Counted from the first letter of the stretch, positions 3,943-26,202 are shown. The stretch: 64,000 nucleotides of DNA from Dimorphilus gyrociliatus (GCA_904063045.1 CAJFCJ010000010.1:124001-188000), one strand, 5' to 3'. Numbers and translations are program-made. The notes: a model not told the origin generated them from the letters alone.

Positions 3943-5812
3943 CTACATAGTTATACTATTGTCATAAGATCTGGGAAATGGCACAATATCTTTTATATTC
4001 TTTATTCCAGTTAGGGCTTGCAGGAAACGATCGAAACCTATTCCCAATCCACAATGTGGAACTGAACCGAATCTTCGCAGATCCAAGTACCATTCAAAGG
4101 CTTCAATATTCTTAATACCACTTTCTTCCATGTTTCTCTTTAAATTATCAATGTTATCTTCTCTAACGCTTCCGCCACATACTTCACCCACATGCGGATA
4201 AAGAAGATCAACATTCTTTACGGTCTTACCATCGACGTTTCTTTTCATGTAGAATGGTTTCAAAGCGATAGGATATTCTTCAACAAATACGGGACATTGA
4301 TTACAATGGCTTACTAGGAACCTTTCGTGTTCCTTTCCAAAATCTTCTCCCCATTTTGGGACGTAATCAAACTGTTTTCTATGCTTCTGTAAGATTTCGA
4401 CAGCTTCTGTATACGTCATGCTATTCCATGGAGAATATATGATTATCAACTACAAGCCAGGCACTTAGAATAGAAAAAACAGTCATCTTACCCCTGATAG
4501 CTCTCTTTTGCAATTGCATCGACAGTTTTCATTAAATCCTCGACTTCGCTATGTTTCCATAAATATTTCAAATCCTTTTCATGCTTATCAATCAAGTTAT
4601 CAACCGTTTCGCTTAGTAAGGCGTCCACAAGATCTGTTACTTCGTGAAGGTCATCACAAAATGCCATCTCAATTTCGAGCATATAAAACTCTGACAAGTG
4701 ATGGCGAGTCTTACTATGGTCCGCTCTTAAAATAGGACCAAAAGTAAAAACTTTTGGTATAGCGCTAAATTAGAAATATAGAATTAAGTTAAGAATCATA
4801 TTAATATTCTATTATAAGTTACAGTAAACTTTTAACATGAAAAAAGTGTACTTACTGCGAAAGAGCTTCAAGGTGAAATTGGGCAGATACGGTTAAAAAT
4901 GACGGCTTATCAAAAAATTCTTTATTTTCATGAGCTACAGCTTTAAAAACATATCCAGCACCTTCGCAATCATTCGTTGTCATAATTGGTGTATGCACTT
5001 CGTAAAATCCCTCATCCTTTATTGATAAATTAATAGTTAACAAACTTAGTTACGCCTATTTCAAGGTCACTTCTTTCAGATACCGTTAAATAGGATCTTA
5101 AATCTCGACTAGCTTCGTGGCGAAGTCTCAGAACAGTACCATCAAATTTATTTCTAGGTCTTAAGTGTTGAAATTGCCTTCTATATTCAATATCATGCAT
5201 TTTCTTTGATTTGAATGGATAGGCCTATTGTTTGTGAAAAAGGAAAATGATATATTTTTATTGCAAATAACAAATATTATGTAGTAATAAGCTACCTCTG
5301 GATCGCAAGAACCCAAAACTTTTACTTCTTCAACGCTTAATTCAACCTCTTGCTTGTCATAAGGACTCCTAACTAAACGACCTTTTGCCTCAACACTACT
5401 TCCATACGTTAAGTTGCTAATAAAGATAAATTTCATAACGATTAAGTGCTACCGATGGCAATAAGCTAGAAATTCTAGATAGTATAAAACTAACGGAATC
5501 GGAAGATCGTCTAAGGCGACTATCTGCAGGTCATCGGTTGTTGTTCCATCTTGTAAATGGAGAAAGGTGACATTCTTGTGCTTTCTTATTGAAGAGATCC
5601 ATCCCTAAGAAAGCAAAAACAAAATGACTCAATCTCTTGAGAAGTCAGTCTTCGTATTTCATACTAACCCTAACAACAACGTCTTCTGTAGGAGGGTTTT
5701 CATTTAACGATTGAACAACTGTGCATATCTTTGGTTCTCTAACCATAAAAGAGGATGTATCTGTGCAAAAGCGTCGTGTTGTCGTTAAGCATTTCCGAAG
5801 TAGACGAAACAT
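3943..5812 (-). CDS. NARS2: Mitochondrial asparaginyl-tRNA synthetase (multi-exon)
   Basis: N-terminal targeting-like [17 protein letters not shown]-fold start [52 protein letters not shown], motif 3 [12 protein letters not shown] and IKDIVPFPR. Exons join in frame at GT-AG introns. Confidence 0.93.
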
Positions 5813-7390
5813 TCTTGATAAAATAATAATAATAGATGTTATCTACCATTTCATGTGGGAACTGTTTTACTTTAAATGTAACATAATCCACTGACAATTG
5901 AATTTTACTATATCGCTCAATTCTACATTCTATAATGATAACAACCAATATACAAAAAGAATACCTTATAAAACCATGAATATATCCCTAACTATATGAT
6001 CTAAGAAAAATTTTAAATGACTAATAGCAAATCGTTCAGGTCTTTTTTTATAATCTTTTCAGAATGACACTAAGGATGAAAATAAAAATCGAATATGATT
6101 CCAATTGAAGACATCGCATTCTCCCGTTTTTTTTTACTGAACAGCAACTTGAAACAATGAAATTATCTTTATTGTTTCCCTAATAAGTCAGCTGATTCGT
6201 AACGGAAATTTTTGGTTTTATTTTTCATAATATATTGCTCCACTTTTCTTTTTTTAGATCTATTTGATATTGACCTACTTCTTTAATGGACGTAACAATT
6301 TAATAAATATCATCGGTAAAGCTAAATTATCCAGATACACCCTCTTCTCTCTTCTATACTATCGAAAAGTGTGCATCTTCTATTAATAAGCTTTCTATTT
6401 CGAATCAAAAAGCGAGGCGAAACTGTAACTGTTTAGTAACAAAAAGTCAACTAAAAGAATTACAGTAGAAATGCCACATAATTTCATAGAATTTATGGTC
6501 AATTTATTATTAAATTGAAATTAAACAGACCCATAAAAGTGATCAAATTAAAAACAACTATTTTATTATAAATACCCCTGTAATAATTCAATAAATCATC
6601 TACCATTGTTTGTAAACGACAAACTGAGAAAGAATGGCACTTTTTACCGTTTGTTTGAGAATCTTAATAAAAAAAGTCTAGCAAATAAACTTAAAAGAGG
6701 AAATCCAATGTAAAGCTTACAACATACAGACATTTAATCATAGCCTGAAAAAACGTGATAAGTTTTGATTGACACTTTTCACTTTTCATCATAAGTGTTG
6801 TTTCTTTTAAATATAAAAGTATTCCAATTTGCTGTAAAACTAAATGTAAAAGATACTATCTGCTAAAATATATATGATTATTTTACTTCTATCTTAGATA
6901 GGGTATATCGGTCATTCAACTTTCTATATCCAAAGAAAACAACCTAAAGCTCTGTTCTTCTCCCTCCCCTCCCTTCCTTATTTCTTTATATTTGTAGAAA
7001 TATTCTTCCTTTAGTCTAAATATTTTGAAAGTAATAAAAGTAAAACTATTAATGATATTCTAAAAAAAATAATAAGAAAATTGCATTCCTCTTTACTCAT
7101 TCTTCGTCTATTTTTATTATTCTTTATATTCGTTTGTTGCGTCAAAGTCATATAAAGAGGAAGAGTTGAGGTTGTAAAATTATATTTAAACGACTTTATA
7201 GTCTGGTCTAACCTTGAAAAGCATATTTGATGTATTAAATAAAAAATATATACATCTTTTTCATTCTTAATGCTGTTTTTTTTTAAATAAAAAAACAAAT
7301 ATGAAGAAAATATCAATGGATGATACTTTTTTAAGAGTTTCATAACAATAAAAAGTTTATATTTTCTTCTTACGTTTTGCTAAACTTTAT

Positions 7391-7904
7391 TTATTTTCCT
7401 TTAAATTGGTCTTCTAATTGTTTTTGCCTTTTGTCTTCCAAAAACATTATTGTATCCTTTATTGCTTTTAACTGTTGGGATAACATTTGCAATTTAATGC
7501 ATAAACCGATAGATATTTTATAAACTATTAACAAAATTCATTCGATTGCTTACATTTTCAGCACTATCTGGAGGATATAATTCTTTCTGTGACAAGAAAT
7601 AAAAAGAAACAAGAAAATGTAGCCTTTTTTTGCTTTTTCGCATATTTCATTTGTTACAAACGTACCCTTTTTTTAACAGTCCATTCTTCGAAGAATTCGG
7701 GTTGATTATATAACCAAAAAACGGTAATTGGGAATGCCATATATATACTCATCTGTACGCAAGAAAAAGTGTGCAACGCAATTAATGATCCAATCGAAAT
7801 TAGGAAAATTGTTCAATAATATTAGTGATGTTGGAAAAGCATACAACTATTTTTTGAAATGAAATATTAGTAACCTTTAAAGCTTCTAATCTCCAATTTC
7901 CCAT
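7391..7904 (-). CDS. PET100: PET100 cytochrome c oxidase assembly factor (76 aa, 4 exons)
   Basis: Exons 7904-7875, 7752-7666, 7586-7554 and 7471-7391 splice in phase 0 to give MGNWRLEALKMSIYMAFPITVFWLYNQPEFFEEWTVKKRKELYPPDSAENLKAIKDTIMFLEDKRQKQLEDQFKGK. This matches the PET100 pattern (LE..M..Y..FP...FW..NQ.E.FE....RK.ELWPP). Confidence 0.9.
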
Positions 7905-8100
7905 GATGAAAAAGTAGTAAATTATATTGTAAATATGAAAAGTTCTCTATAAATTTTCAAGGAGACCAAAATTTTAGCGATCAAGATACCATACTATAAT
8001 TACGAATTTTTCTAGAAGTGAATTTCGATAGTTCAGTATCTTTGATTGTTATTCGTAACTATATACAGAAAAACACTTGACATGCTTTGATAAAGAAAAA

Positions 8101-11100
8101 ATGCCCGTAACTTATAAAGTAATCAATTTAACTAAATTTTTATTAACTAATCCTAATAATTAAATTGGTTTCTTTAGTTATTAAAGGAGAGATCAACAGG
8201 AGAATTGGATATTATTGAATATCTCGATTTAACATCAGCAGGAATAGGTAGGCCTAATTGTTTTAAAAAATTGTATATTTTGATTATATATTAATAATTT
8301 CTATTATCTTTTGTCAAAATGATATTAAAAACCAAAAGCTTATATTGATGAATTGGATTTTTGTTCAAATTTGAAATATCTAGATGTTAAAGGGAATAGT
8401 ATTGATATTGTAACAAACTTAGAGTCTTGTACCGAATTGTGGCATTTGGACCTTTCCTGCAATCAGGTAGGTATACTTTATGATAATTAATTAATAGAGA
8501 AAAAAAATAATGTTAATCTTATTGCAAAAAGATAAGAAACGTTGATTCTCTATCGGATTTTGTTGCTTTTGGTTGTTTAAAACTAAATAATAATAGGTTA
8601 AACTGGAAAAATTTGGAAAAAATAAGAGGTTGCCATATAATAAGCTTAACACTTCAAGCTAATCCTTTAGAAAAGGATCCTCATTGTAAGAATTAAAAAT
8701 TTTGCTATTAATATACTATATTATGTAATATTATATATTATTCTTTATCAGATAGAAAACACGTGATAGATTGTTTCCCGTATCTATGGATGTTGGATGG
8801 AATATTTATTACAGGTATTTAAAATATATAGGCTATTATTGACAGGTAATATTTTAATTAATCTTACTTAACAAACAGCTGCTGAAAGAGAATACGTTTT
8901 CAATTTCTTTGAAAAGTCGGCATTATCTAAAAAACCAATTGTAATAAGATATCTTTAATACCTTTACTTTATTAAATAAATAGAATAAACAATCTATTTC
9001 TATTCTAGAGACATAAACTGTTACCATGGAAATTGAAAACTTTCTCATCAACCCATCAATCAAATTTAAATCATGGGATATTGGCAAATGAATATTTTAA
9101 GAATTTTCCACCTAAGGATATGTGCCATAATCATAGTGTGTATACATTTCATTACTATTTATTAATATTACATAATCCTAATGCTTTTCGTTTTCTTCTT
9201 CAATATAATAGTTATAGATATTAAAAAACTAAAATATATGATCAATGATACAGCACAGTATTTCGTAACAAAAGCCAGGTTTTTACTTTTTGCCTATAAT
9301 TAATAAATAGCCCTGTTTTCATTTCTCTCTACATTCAATTGTTTTTATTATAGAACTGGAACATTGGCGGAATTTTCTATCAACGAACTACCTGAATATA
9401 TGGATAATTTCTTTGAATTAATGATAACAACCCCAAAGTATTGGACATTGTTAATAACTACTATTCATGTAATATAATAACTAATGATATACAAAATTTA
9501 TAAATTCTTTCTACTATTTCATAGATATCGCTATGGTTCAATATTCCATTGGTCTGCTATGACAATATCTTTACAATGTTACACTTAAATGATAGGTAAC
9601 AATAATTAGCTTTATTGATTGAGTAGTATATTTTAATTAATGAATTATTTGCCATATTTTAGTGATTTGGATTTCAATACCATATTTAAATATCCTAAAG
9701 AGATCAGAGTATTAATAGGTGTTTTTCTCTTCAATTTAGTGAAAATTAAGAGAGACTCCGGCCAGGTTAGTTAATCAACTCCATTCACGCAATTATAATC
9801 AATAGTGTTTTTAATATGTTTTTTTATTAGAAGATGGATGTAAACGATAGGCTTTATACAACTTTATTCTATTCTAGTCTTATTCAATTTAAACTGTATA
9901 ATAAAGCAAAAAAGTGCTTGAACAAGGAGGATATGATTATGTAAATTTTGTTTTTGAATAAATATAGAAGTGTATAAGATATTTAATAGAAAATATTTCA
10001 GAGTTGAGAGGATTAAGAAATCTCTTGCTATTGAATTTTTGCCTTTATTCACCAACAGTTCGGTCTGCTTAAACCAAATTGAGGAGAGTAAAGGTAAATA
10101 TCTTCAATGTTGTGTACTCTCTTATAAGTTTGTGTTTAAGAGATATCGTCTTTACAGGTATTCAAGCCCTTGTATCTTCCGCTCTTGGGACTTTGGCGAC
10201 TAATCGAATTGAAAAACTTATTCAATCAATTCGTCAAAAGGTTGGATATTGATATAGAATAAGAGTCTTCTTCTTTTTTTCTTTTTTATATAAACTAAAT
10301 TTTGCCCTTCCTTCAATATTTAGGTTGAAGAGCATGAGATAATCTCAATCTTACATCAAACAGGATTGGCAATATGTCAAATATGTTTAAAAATCATATC
10401 TGATTTATCTTTAAAGGATATACAACCAAAATCAATTAATGTATATATCATTTATACTATTGTATATTTGCACACACCAAAGTATGAATTTTTACATAGA
10501 GACGATTCAATATCTATTTAAATAGTAACAATAAAAATTCAATAAGGCGTCTCTTTTTGCAAAAGAGACATTTTAAAGTTCAACCTTTAGTAGTACTACC
10601 TCTTTACGAAATAAATTTACAACAACGCGCCCCTTAGGAGTACTTAGTCCAAAAATACACAGTGTATATAATAGTATAGTACGTTGTACTTTGTAGAAAT
10701 TCATAATTTGGTGTATGCACGGTATATTTAACATAAAGATTACGAATAATATTTAATAGCCATTTCCTTTTTTTCCTATTTTGATTCGTAGAATGGAATT
10801 ATTAAATCAAAGAAAAGATTGATTGAAGCTATTCAAAAGTCAAATTATCACGAATCTGGTCTTAGTTTTCCAGAAAAGCCAGACAACGAAGTATGTCTTA
10901 ATGTTGAAAAATATTGCAGAAAATTTCCAGGTTCCTTAAAATTATAATACATTTTAAATGATCCTAATCAACTAACGTAAATTTCCGCTAACTCGTCTAG
11001 CCATTGGTGATAAGATAATGCTAGCTGCTCAGCAACTTGGGGTAATTTTGGCACTACCCGAACCTTTTAGGGCTATTGCCCAAAGAGATACTGTTTTGGC

Positions 11101-22289: not shown

Positions 22290-25200
22290 ATGATTAATGA
22301 CGAAGAAAAAGACCTATTAGGTGGAACCAAGTTAGAGGCAGGAGATATTGGAGTAATAGTTGCATATTTCGTTATAGTTTTAGGATTTGGTTTGTGGGTA
22401 AGCGATTTGAAACTTGACTAACTCAACTTAATTTTGTTATCTAGTCATATAAAAATTTCATCTACTGATATGTTGGAAAGACTATCTGATTTTCTCAACA
22501 AGTATAGCATATTGTAGCATGTGCAATATGCAAAGCGAACCTAACTATGTTTACATACTTTATTTAAAGTTTGCTTTATTCTTCACTTTGGAAATTTTAA
22601 TGCATTCATTAAATAATTTCCTCATTGCGTAAATCATTTTTATTAGAATGTCTTCTATATTCTTTAAATAAAGACGACATTTTGCACACTATTACTATTA
22701 GATATTTTTCGGAACAAGCTCTAAAATAAAGCAATATTTCAACTAGTATTAACATGTTATACTTATCTTTATAGGATATATCTGCATCAACAAAATAAAG
22801 TCATTCTGAATTTTTTTTAGCGCAAAAAATTAATTCGTTAAACTGTCTAAGGTTTTGAATAAAGACTTTAATTTATTCACAAAAACCTACAGATTAAATT
22901 TAAACAGAATGCATACGTTCTATCGTTGATTCTAATTAATATGTAATATCGCTATAATAAATAATTTTTCCAAGTTTATAGGGAAACTCTCATATTCTTT
23001 CAACTCAGCATTACTTTTATAATATCATATAAATTCGTTTTTAATAGTCATCGTTAAGAAATAGAGGTAGTGTTGGAGGATATTTCCTGGCTGGCAGATC
23101 TATGCACTGGATACCTGTAGGGGCTTCTCTCTTCGCTAGTAATATCGGAAGCGGACATTTTATTGGATTAGCAGGATCCGGAGCGTCTAGTGGAATAGGA
23201 ATTTCGGTTTTTGAGTTAAGTGTACGTTGAAGGCGAATTTTCAATTTATTACTTGAATAATAATATTAATTTTCAAAACAACATTTAGGCCATATTTATA
23301 TTAATGCTATTAGGCTGGGTTTTTGTTCCAGTATATATGGCTGCAGGTGTAAGTTCGATTCTGTTCCATCTTTTGATATTGTTTAAACTTTTTATGAGAT
23401 AGGTTTTTACAATGCCCGAATACTTACGGAAACGTTTCGGAGGCCAAAGAATTCGAGTCTATTTGGCTATTATGGCTTTAATTTTATCCATTTTCACAAA
23501 AGTTGCAGTAGGTATTCTAATGGATATAAGATTAATATATATATATATACTGTATATGTTTACTTACAAAGTTAAAAATCTTTATGTAGGCTGACTTATA
23601 CGCCGGAGCTATATTCATTGAACAATCACTTGGTTGGAATTTATATTTTGCAGTAACCCTTTTGTTGGGTATTGCTGCCTTATTTACTATATCCGGCGGT
23701 TTAACTGCAGTAATATGGACTGATTTTATTCAAACAATCATTATGCTTATCGGAGCAGCCGCATTGATGATAATAAGTAAGTGGTGTCTATCAACTTTTT
23801 TAAACAAAACTCTGATTATCATATGATCGTAAAAAAATTATAAAAATAATTCAGGCATGGCCAAGGTTGGTAATTTTTCAACGATTTCACAACGCTTTAT
23901 GGAAAGCCTTCCTAATTCAACAATTTTTAATTTGTATCATCCGGATGGGAATCGTTCAAATCCTTATATAAATTGTGGATTTCCTCCCGAAAATTCTCTC
24001 CATCTTTTCAGAGCAGCCAATGATTCTCAATTGCCTTGGCCTGGGGTGTTTATCGGTTTAACAATATCTTCAATTTGGTATTGGTGTTCCGATCAGGTTG
24101 AGATAACCTACATATTGTTAATTAATTTTAATTTCTTTTTGTTGAACACTCTATTTATCATCTTTCTATCTCTCTTTACGTTTTTAGATTTCTATTCTGG
24201 TTACACCTGATTTACTGACATAAAAAAAGCTTCTTAGAATAGTAATAATATCTTCATAGTAGTCGCATTTTCTTTATCGTACATTTGATTGAGTGATAAA
24301 TTTGTTAGAAGATTATATTTAGCTCAATAACAACTTTTATAACTCTTCTTTCGCAATAAAGGTATAACAGAAGTTGGCGGTTGGGAAAATATTAAATATA
24401 GATTTTTTAATGCCATATCAAATAATACTTGGCATAAGTTTTTGAGAAATAACCTAACAAAGCCTGATTGTGGACTTCCTCCATCGAATTCTTTGCACTT
24501 ATTTCGTAGTCATAAAGATGGAAACTATCCTTGGCCAGGCGTCGTTTTCGGTGCAACCGTTTCAGGTGTCTGGTATTGGTGTTCCGATCAGGTTTAAATT
24601 TAACTCAATTTTCATAAAATTTCCTCACTAATGCACCTTTCTTTCTTAACAATTTCATTTTATTTTAAATTCGTCTTAACACTGCCTTTAAAGTATTTTA
24701 ATTTAAAACAATATCAACAGGTTATCGTTCAAAGGGCTTTGGCATCCAAAAATCTAACACATGCTAAAGCTGGGACGATTCTGGCTGGCTACATAAAGTT
24801 GTTGCCCATGTGGCTATTAGTTGTTCCTGGAATGGTTGCTAGAATTTTGTTTCCGAATACTGTTGGATGTGCTGATCCAGTTACATGTGAAGAGGCTTGT
24901 GGACAAAAACAAGGATGTACAAATATCGCTTATCCTCTTTTAGTTCTAAAGGTTAAGAAATTTTTAATAGAGAATAATTTACTTAAAAGATGTTTCTACC
25001 TTACCTTTTTCTTAATGGCTACAGTTAATGCCCGTTGGTGCTAGAGGTATGATGTTGGCCGTTATGATGGCGGCTCTTATGTCTAGTTTAACATCAATAT
25101 TTAATTCTTCTTCTACACTCTTTACGCTGGATATTTGGAGAAAATTTCGCAAAAATGCCACTGATACAGAATTGATGATTGTTGGCAGAGTTTTTGTTTT

Positions 25201-26202
25201 GTTTATGGTTGCCGTGGGGATTGTTTGGATTCCTATAGTTAAAAATTTCGCTGAATTGTTTCACTATATACAAAGTATTACAAGTTATTTATCTCCACCT
25301 GTGTGTGCTGTTTATGTTCTCGCAATTGTATGGAAAAGAATTAACGAAAAAGGAGCGTTCAGTGGTTTAGTCATAGGACTCCTCATTGGTATTGCAAGAT
25401 TTGCATGGGAGTACTCCTACAAAAGACCTGCTTGTGGGGAAGAAGATTCCAGACCTGCTATAATCAAAGTAAATTATGTTACCACAAATTAGTGATATAT
25501 TTATACAGAATATCATTGTTTTGTTTGCATTATACAGGACGTTCACTATCTGCATTTTGGAATTATTCTTTTTGTTATAGTATGCATTGTTACGACTGTA
25601 GTTAGCCTTGTCACCCAGCCTATTGATGATATTCACGTAAGTTTTTACGCAAGCCCAACTAAGTATACAAATCTCTTTTTGTTTTGTGTATTATATGTGC
25701 TTTTCATAATAATAATAATAAAACAGCTTTTCCGATTAACGTTCTGGACAAGACATAGTATAGAGGAAAGAGTAGATTTGTCCGAATTGGAGAAGACCGA
25801 TGATGAAGGCACAGAAAGCCAAAGAGAAAAGGATTCAGTATACGAGGAAACAGAAGAGGATTGTAAGAATCTCTTATACTGCATATCTTATGTTTGTTAC
25901 GAATAATTTGCGAAAATAATTTATTAGACGATAGTCTGCCTTGGTATAAGAAAGCGTTCAATTGGATATGCGGCATTGAAAAACAAAATGAACCCGCCTT
26001 AAGCCCTGAAGAACAGGCTTCTATTCAAGTAAACAATCGATTTGTTTATTTTATTTTTAAATATTTAAAAATATTTATTTATTTTTTATTTTAGAAAAAG
26101 TATGAATCTTTGTCCGAAGATCCATTCTGGAAGAAAGTTTGCGGTTGGAACGCTATGATTCTTATGGTTATTACCACTTTTATTTGGGGATTCTTTTATT
26201 AG
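22290..26202 (+). CDS. Sodium/glucose cotransporter-like SLC5A (SGLT subfamily) solute symporter
   Basis: [100 protein letters not shown]. The exact human ortholog is not assignable by eye. Confidence 0.95.
23855..24096 (+). other. SLC5A alternative exon A (242 nt, phase 1 to phase 0)
   Basis: TCAG acceptor and GTTGAG donor. Encodes SMAKVGNF...[42 protein letters not shown]. Confidence 0.85.
24362..24591 (+). other. SLC5A alternative exon B (230 nt, phase 1 to phase 0), paralogous to exon A
   Basis: AAAG acceptor and GTTTAA donor. Encodes SITEVGGW...[42 protein letters not shown] with no internal stop. Confidence 0.8.

Follow-up and report, generated by a model that had tools for sequence, protein, structure and literature searches.

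A candidate mutually exclusive exon pair for the extracellular loop and TM6 of an SGLT4-like cotransporter gene in Dimorphilus gyrociliatus

Background

The sugar selectivity of SGLT transporters, which are major targets for drugs, is still being mapped residue by residue. In the annelid Dimorphilus gyrociliatus, a gene of this type contains two neighboring homologous exons, here called 6A and 6B, for the same stretch of the protein. The locus raises the question of whether one gene makes two transporters by using one of these exons at a time and, if so, whether the two differ in the sugars they handle. The gene lies in the window, the 64,000-nucleotide stretch of DNA that was analyzed as a whole (CAJFCJ010000010.1:124001-188000); positions are counted from its first base unless another sequence is named. 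An earlier sequence-only reading of the window had proposed that the two exons are mutually exclusive and that the resulting transporters differ in sugar selectivity or trafficking.

Structure of the transporter gene

The gene is an SGLT/SLC5A-type sodium:solute symporter gene that runs on the plus strand from 22290 to 26199, the 3' end being approximate, and has about 12 short exons. SGLT motifs are found in open stretches along the plus strand over ~22.3-26.2 kb, and the gene is compact within an AT-rich window (~31% GC). Introns of D. gyrociliatus are very short in general, with a median of 66 nt (PMC7854359). Exon 5 (63.6 bits, E 2e-17, profile positions 103-164), exon 7 (53.5 bits, E 2e-14, positions 220-286) and exon 8 (131 bits, positions 288-406) all score above the curated cut-off of 22.8 bits for the Pfam SSF family (PF00474). 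The variable loop keeps exons 6A and 6B, each searched alone against the SSF profile, from reaching E 0.01. Both match residues 225-295 of human SGLT1 (E 4e-11 for 6A and 8e-12 for 6B), and the closest solved structures for both exons are human SGLT1 (7sl8, 7wmv) and SGLT2 (7vsi), again over residues 225-295, with E values from 1e-8 to 8e-12. The TM6 motif WYWC(S/T)DQ, followed by VIVQR, is read from 6A or 6B into exon 7. The nearest named relatives are annotated as 'sodium/glucose cotransporter 4-like'. The gene belongs to the SGLT/SLC5A1-like branch of PF00474, and Na+-coupled transport of sugar or inositol is predicted for its product.

The two alternative exons lie between constitutive exons 5 and 7 on the plus strand. 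Exon 5 (23590-23776, AG/GT) ends in phase 1 and has 95% amino acid identity to its counterpart in a related species. It is followed by a 78-nt intron (23777-23854), exon 6A (23855-24096, 242 nt), a 265-nt intron (24097-24361), exon 6B (24362-24591, 230 nt), a 129-nt intron (24592-24720) and exon 7 (24721-24951, AG/GT), and all three introns are of the GT...AG type. Each alternative exon runs from phase 1 to phase 0 and encodes the extracellular loop and TM6, with ISSIWYW in 6A and VSGVWYW in 6B. The loop has four N-glycosylation sequons in 6A (NFS, NST, NRS and NDS) and two in 6B (NNT and NLT). The two products share 45% amino acid identity, and the window holds two exon-6-type copies only. 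When the sequence was re-read, the exon bounds, splice sites, phases and sequons were those given in the earlier reading, and the translations also agree with it in that both exons end in WYWCSDQ and keep the loop Cys.

Reading frame and exclusivity

The lengths of 6A and 6B are both 2 mod 3, and each exon has AG before it and GT after it. Because of these lengths, inclusion of both exons gives an immediate stop and omission of both shifts the frame, as had been claimed from the sequence, and spliced translations bear this out. With exon 5, 6A, 6B and exon 7 joined in order, translation stops right after ...WYWCSDQV, where 6B begins with GTATAA. Joining exon 5 to exon 7 without either copy gives a stop 15 codons into exon 7, and with 6A alone or 6B alone the frame is open through exon 9. 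Every mature mRNA would then carry one of the two exons, and the two proteins would be the same outside the segment equivalent to SGLT1 225-295, which comprises the glycosylated loop and the TM6 of the sugar pocket. Transcripts with both exons or neither would give truncated products and would probably be cleared by nonsense-mediated decay.

Frame incompatibility is the one means of exclusivity that can be seen in the sequence. The intron between 6A and 6B, at 265 nt, is too long for steric exclusion. The arthropod mutually exclusive exon clusters of Dscam1 and 14-3-3zeta are governed by competing RNA pairing. As is proposed here, they consist of tandem homologous exons used singly, but a search of the window and of a related-species locus (L001, see below) for conserved intronic docking/selector pairing returned only AT-rich matches, none of them common to both species.

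Selection on both exons

A word search with exon 6A identified an ORF with 86% identity (P0001), and its contigs (L001-L004) are Logan assemblies of SRR23372228 and sister runs. Their sequence runs collinear with that of the window for 20 kb, with a nucleotide identity of 70-80%. The transporter gene has the same neighbors in the window and in L001, being preceded by a TYW2-like gene and followed by a kelch gene. Exon A lies at 9999-10240 and exon B at 10782-11011 of L001. Their lengths (242 and 230 nt) are those of the window exons, both have AG/GT sites, exon B again begins with GTATAA, and the stop at the A-B join is also kept. All three introns flanking the two exons are unalignable between the window and L001; the one between A and B measures 541 nt in L001, twice its length in the window. 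A relative whose introns cannot be aligned has both copies at unchanged length and with the same splice sites, which excludes chance as the origin of this arrangement. The sequons are all kept in L001 except NDS of exon A.

Exons 6A and 6B are both under strong purifying selection. Between the window and L001, 6A has a pN of 0.071, a pS of 0.53 and a dN/dS of 0.081 (Fisher p 6e-13 for pN vs pS), and 6B has a pN of 0.055, a pS of 0.58 and a dN/dS of 0.051 (Fisher p 1.4e-14). The corresponding values for seven constitutive exons pooled are a pN of 0.038, a pS of 0.70 and a dN/dS of 0.019. The earlier reading had named a dN/dS near 1 as a sign of a decaying exon and had asked for the measurement on 6B; the value for 6B is far from this, and decay is seen in neither exon.

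Taken together, 6A and 6B have diverged less at synonymous sites (pS 0.55) than the seven constitutive exons have (pS 0.70; Fisher p 0.01), a comparison that rests on few sites. Lowered synonymous divergence is the usual mark of alternatively spliced exons, and the lower pS of this pair suggests that the exons contain splicing signals.

The upstream neighbor of the transporter gene, at ~19.3-22.4 kb of the window, is a TYW2/TRM5-like methyltransferase gene with its counterpart at 5322-8437 of L001. The two loci are collinear throughout this stretch, with ~74% nucleotide identity. The minus strand of L001 has an ORF of 497 residues at 6653-8146 with no Pfam match, and the same gene should sit in the matching stretch of the window.

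Exon 6 arrays in other animals

The earlier reading had called for a search for the duplication in related genomes, and exon 6 arrays were found in another annelid, a nemertean, a brachiopod and crabs. The hunt used a profile of four exon peptides against 1.84 billion representatives, together with a full-length search with a Fasciola homolog. The profile search returned mostly single-exon ORF fragments of eukaryotic contigs. P0037 and P0038 were considered as spliced transcripts and rejected; they are genomic ORFs of species with the intron elsewhere.

The annelid Capitella teleta (KB309360.1, CAPTEDRAFT_167766) has three copies, reading ISSVWYW, ISSVWYW and VSGVWYW, and a further Logan contig (L008) also has three, reading ISSVWYW, ISGVWYW and ISASWYW. 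As in the window, the copies at both loci stand in tandem, flanked by exons 5 and 7, and every copy has AG/GT sites and a length of 2 mod 3. They number three instead of two, and the residue at the T287 equivalent (the TM6 position discussed below) is in turn S, S and G in Capitella and S, G and A in L008. Of the three Capitella copies, the gene model includes only copy 1.

The nemertean Tubulanus polymorphus has two copies, each bounded by AG/GT sites and 2 mod 3 in length: an S-type copy at 4262-4486 of its contig (L011) and then a G-type copy at 4795-5001. The order of the two types and the intron of ~300 nt between them are as in the window. The contrast of ISS[VI]WYW with VSGVWYW recurs in an annelid, a nemertean and the L008 locus. 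A single exon-6 copy is present within 10 kb at the Aplysia locus and at one other locus (L005).

The brachiopod Lingula anatina has two copies (ISSVWYW and ISATWYW), both of them contained in an old gene model (P0007). Two Lingula isoforms, XP_013421875 and XP_013421876 (P0184 and P0174), both carry the first exon-6 copy. The difference between them is a C-terminal block that looks paralogous, beginning near LYRLTFFTR or LHRLTFWSR and running to the end, which suggests that this gene holds a second set of alternative homologous exons.

The crab Chionoecetes opilio also has two copies (ISGIWYW and IGSTWYW). Its deposited model (P0232) has both alternative exons in series at residues ~205-360, a fusion that is probably an error of annotation brought about by the array. 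The gene models of Capitella, Lingula and Chionoecetes thus miss or mishandle exon-6 copies. A TARA ocean scaffold (TARA_SAMEA2731923 scaffold_79153, L007) has two copies, reading VLAVWYW and VSGVWYW. These are followed by GA and GC, not GT, at 390-392 and 796-798, and the source organism may use non-canonical splice donors.

RefSeq holds pairs of isoforms in which the swap is restricted to exon 6. In Tubulanus the pair is XP_074640671 (ISSVWYW) and XP_074640673 (VSGVWYW), and in the crab Portunus trituberculatus it is XP_045128405 (VSAIWYW) and XP_045128408 (MSGVWYW); Scylla paramamosain has an equivalent pair with exon 6 as the only difference. As is expected for the window gene, these SGLT4-like pairs swap the equivalent of SGLT1 225-295 and leave the rest of the protein identical. 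They differ from the window pair in coming from other phyla and in being annotated isoforms, whereas the window pair is known here from genomic sequence alone, and the two crab pairs combine Ala with Gly where the window combines Ser with Gly. The RefSeq pairs mean that use of one exon 6 at a time has already been recorded in two other phyla, at the level of annotation rather than of reads.

Since the RefSeq pairs differ only in exon 6, the copies recur, and both exons are under selection, the array appears to be real, conserved and mutually exclusive. Exons 6A and 6B are very likely a genuine mutually exclusive pair in an SGLT4-like sodium/sugar cotransporter gene, and this gene can very probably make two versions of the transporter. 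The original proposal of such a pair is thus supported by the anatomy, the frame logic and selection on both exons, and by isoform pairs in other phyla; both exons are presumably used in D. gyrociliatus too.

Mutually exclusive exons are known in other solute carriers, including SLC7A2 (CAT-2A/2B), SLC25A3 (PiC-A/B) and SLC8A1. In these, as here, the swapped unit is a single homologous exon whose product lines or gates the path of the substrate; the families and folds are different. The earlier reading knew of no such switch in SLC5A genes. The literature on mutually exclusive exons in SLC5A/SGLT genes likewise yielded no description of one, but RefSeq annotation does hold such isoform pairs. 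Mutually exclusive exons in transporters are a known kind, and the exon-6 isoforms of a nemertean and crabs are already on record; what sets this case apart is the conserved exchange of a helix of the substrate pocket across phyla.

What the swap changes in the protein

Residues 225-295 of human SGLT1 comprise an extracellular loop, which holds C255 and a glycosylation site, and then TM6 with T287, Y290 and W291. Most of the divergence between 6A and 6B lies in the loop. In TM6 and its approach, 7 of the 22 residues aligned to human SGLT1 273-295 differ between the two exons, the T287 equivalent included; Y290 and W291, the main residues of the pocket, are the same in both. At the T287 equivalent 6A has Ser and 6B has Gly, as the earlier reading had assigned them, and counting back from Q295 gives the same assignment.

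T287 of human SGLT1 is in the sugar pocket, and the T287N substitution cuts affinity for glucose more than affinity for galactose (PMC11061222). This shift in glucose/galactose preference makes position 287 an experimentally shown determinant of selectivity in human SGLT1 (PMC11061222). The equivalent residue in vertebrate paralogs is T in SGLT1, S in SGLT2 and SMIT2, and A in SGLT4; these genes vary at the same TM6 position as 6A and 6B, but by gene duplication and not by alternative splicing. Gly was found at this position in none of the vertebrate SGLT sequences examined. Among 134 related segments, the residue is S in 82, A in 32 and G in 17. The residue differs between copies in every array found, though the arrays may be orthologous, so that these differences are not independent observations. 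Its relation to exon type is variable in crabs, where A/G pairs occur and Chionoecetes has G and then S. Because the residue is not fixed for an exon type across taxa, a simple functional code of Ser versus Gly is not established. That the two isoforms truly differ in sugar selectivity or affinity is a serious possibility, if somewhat short of a probable one.

A swappable TM6 exon would amount to a set of natural chimeras, proteins alike except in the loop and TM6 segment, which could be used to probe the part of this segment in substrate choice, affinity and trafficking. The array would also add a clear case for alternative exons and gene duplicates as interchangeable routes to transporter diversity.

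Two other accounts of the pair bear on what the swap does. It is conceivable that one exon is an unused relic of duplication, or a frame-breaking 'poison' exon that is included along with the other and lowers expression, and the immediate stop at the 6A-6B join, conserved in the related species, would suit the latter. A poison exon requires no conserved amino acid sequence, however, and dN/dS is 0.05-0.08 on both exons while introns and synonymous sites are saturated and splice sites and lengths are intact; with equivalent second exons translated in the annotated Tubulanus and crab isoforms as well, this account is very improbable. A stronger alternative accepts that the exons are used singly and places the difference between the isoforms mainly in the loop, affecting glycosylation, folding, trafficking or partner binding, or in kinetics, with the same sugars carried by both. 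It draws on the concentration of divergence in the loop, the four sequons of 6A against two in 6B, the invariance of Y290 and W291, the occurrence of Ser, Ala and Gly at the T287 equivalent in single-copy relatives, and the loose tie between this residue and exon type in crabs. It fits less well with the difference between copies at that very position in every array, with the ISS[VI]WYW and VSGVWYW contrast shared by annelid, nemertean and L008, with the change in sugar preference caused at the same position in human SGLT1 (PMC11061222), and with the differing residues (T, S, A) of vertebrate paralogs that have different substrates. Such a loop-based difference is plausible, though we would not expect it on balance.

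Age of the array

The pair in the window is one case of an array of two or three exon copies that also occurs in other annelids, in a nemertean, in a brachiopod and in crabs, and it is probably old. In a tree of 49 exon-6 segments (~77 columns), exon 6A clusters with Capitella copy 1 and a D. gyrociliatus paralog, and 6B falls outside this group (UFboot 96, SH-aLRT 85). With the placement of Dinophiliformia among annelids taken from PMC7854359, this grouping suggests that 6A and 6B had already split when Dinophiliformia and the other annelids diverged. The sequence of 6B has likenesses to two Capitella copies, sharing NYPWPGV.FGAT with copy 2 and TVSGVWYW with copy 3.

The arrays of different phyla could instead have arisen by independent, recurrent duplication, in which case the window pair would be specific to dinophilid annelids. 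The exon tree is poorly resolved, and it leaves room for this: a constraint that places 6A and 6B together is not rejected (p-AU 0.73 and 0.21 in two tests), and the free tree has no single G-type clade. Copy number also varies between 2 and 3 among the arrays, with one copy each in Aplysia, in L005 (within 10 kb) and in the D. gyrociliatus paralog. Against recurrent duplication stand the grouping of 6A with Capitella copy 1 to the exclusion of 6B, the same order of S-type first and G-type second in Tubulanus, and the motifs that 6B shares with Capitella copies 2 and 3, and a single G-type clade is not rejected either (p-AU 0.21). Separate origins therefore seem rather unlikely, and an old shared array is the likelier history.

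If the array is old and shared, several phyla would have preserved it over hundreds of millions of years, with the T287 equivalent varied every time. A broader proposal is that the array predates the split of annelids, nemerteans and brachiopods, perhaps also of arthropods, and that it yields two to three sugar specificities through a swap of Ser, Ala or Gly at the T287 equivalent in TM6. This combined proposal is speculative and, taken as a whole, doubtful. Were it true, an ancient specificity-swapping array would be the protostome counterpart of the split of vertebrate SGLT1, SGLT2, SGLT4 and SMIT paralogs.

The D. gyrociliatus paralog, DgyrCDS12944 (P0258), comes from the same assembly (GCA_904063045.1) and is 77-90% identical to the window gene. 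It was considered as an annotation of the window gene and rejected, being a paralog at a different locus (3828-4202 of L009, from CAJFCJ010000022.1) with flanks unrelated to the window. The paralog has one A-like exon 6 and no B-type copy at that locus, and its exon 6 runs into exon 7 without an intron. It looks like a duplicate that has fixed one splice form, or one that has lost the intron and the second exon.
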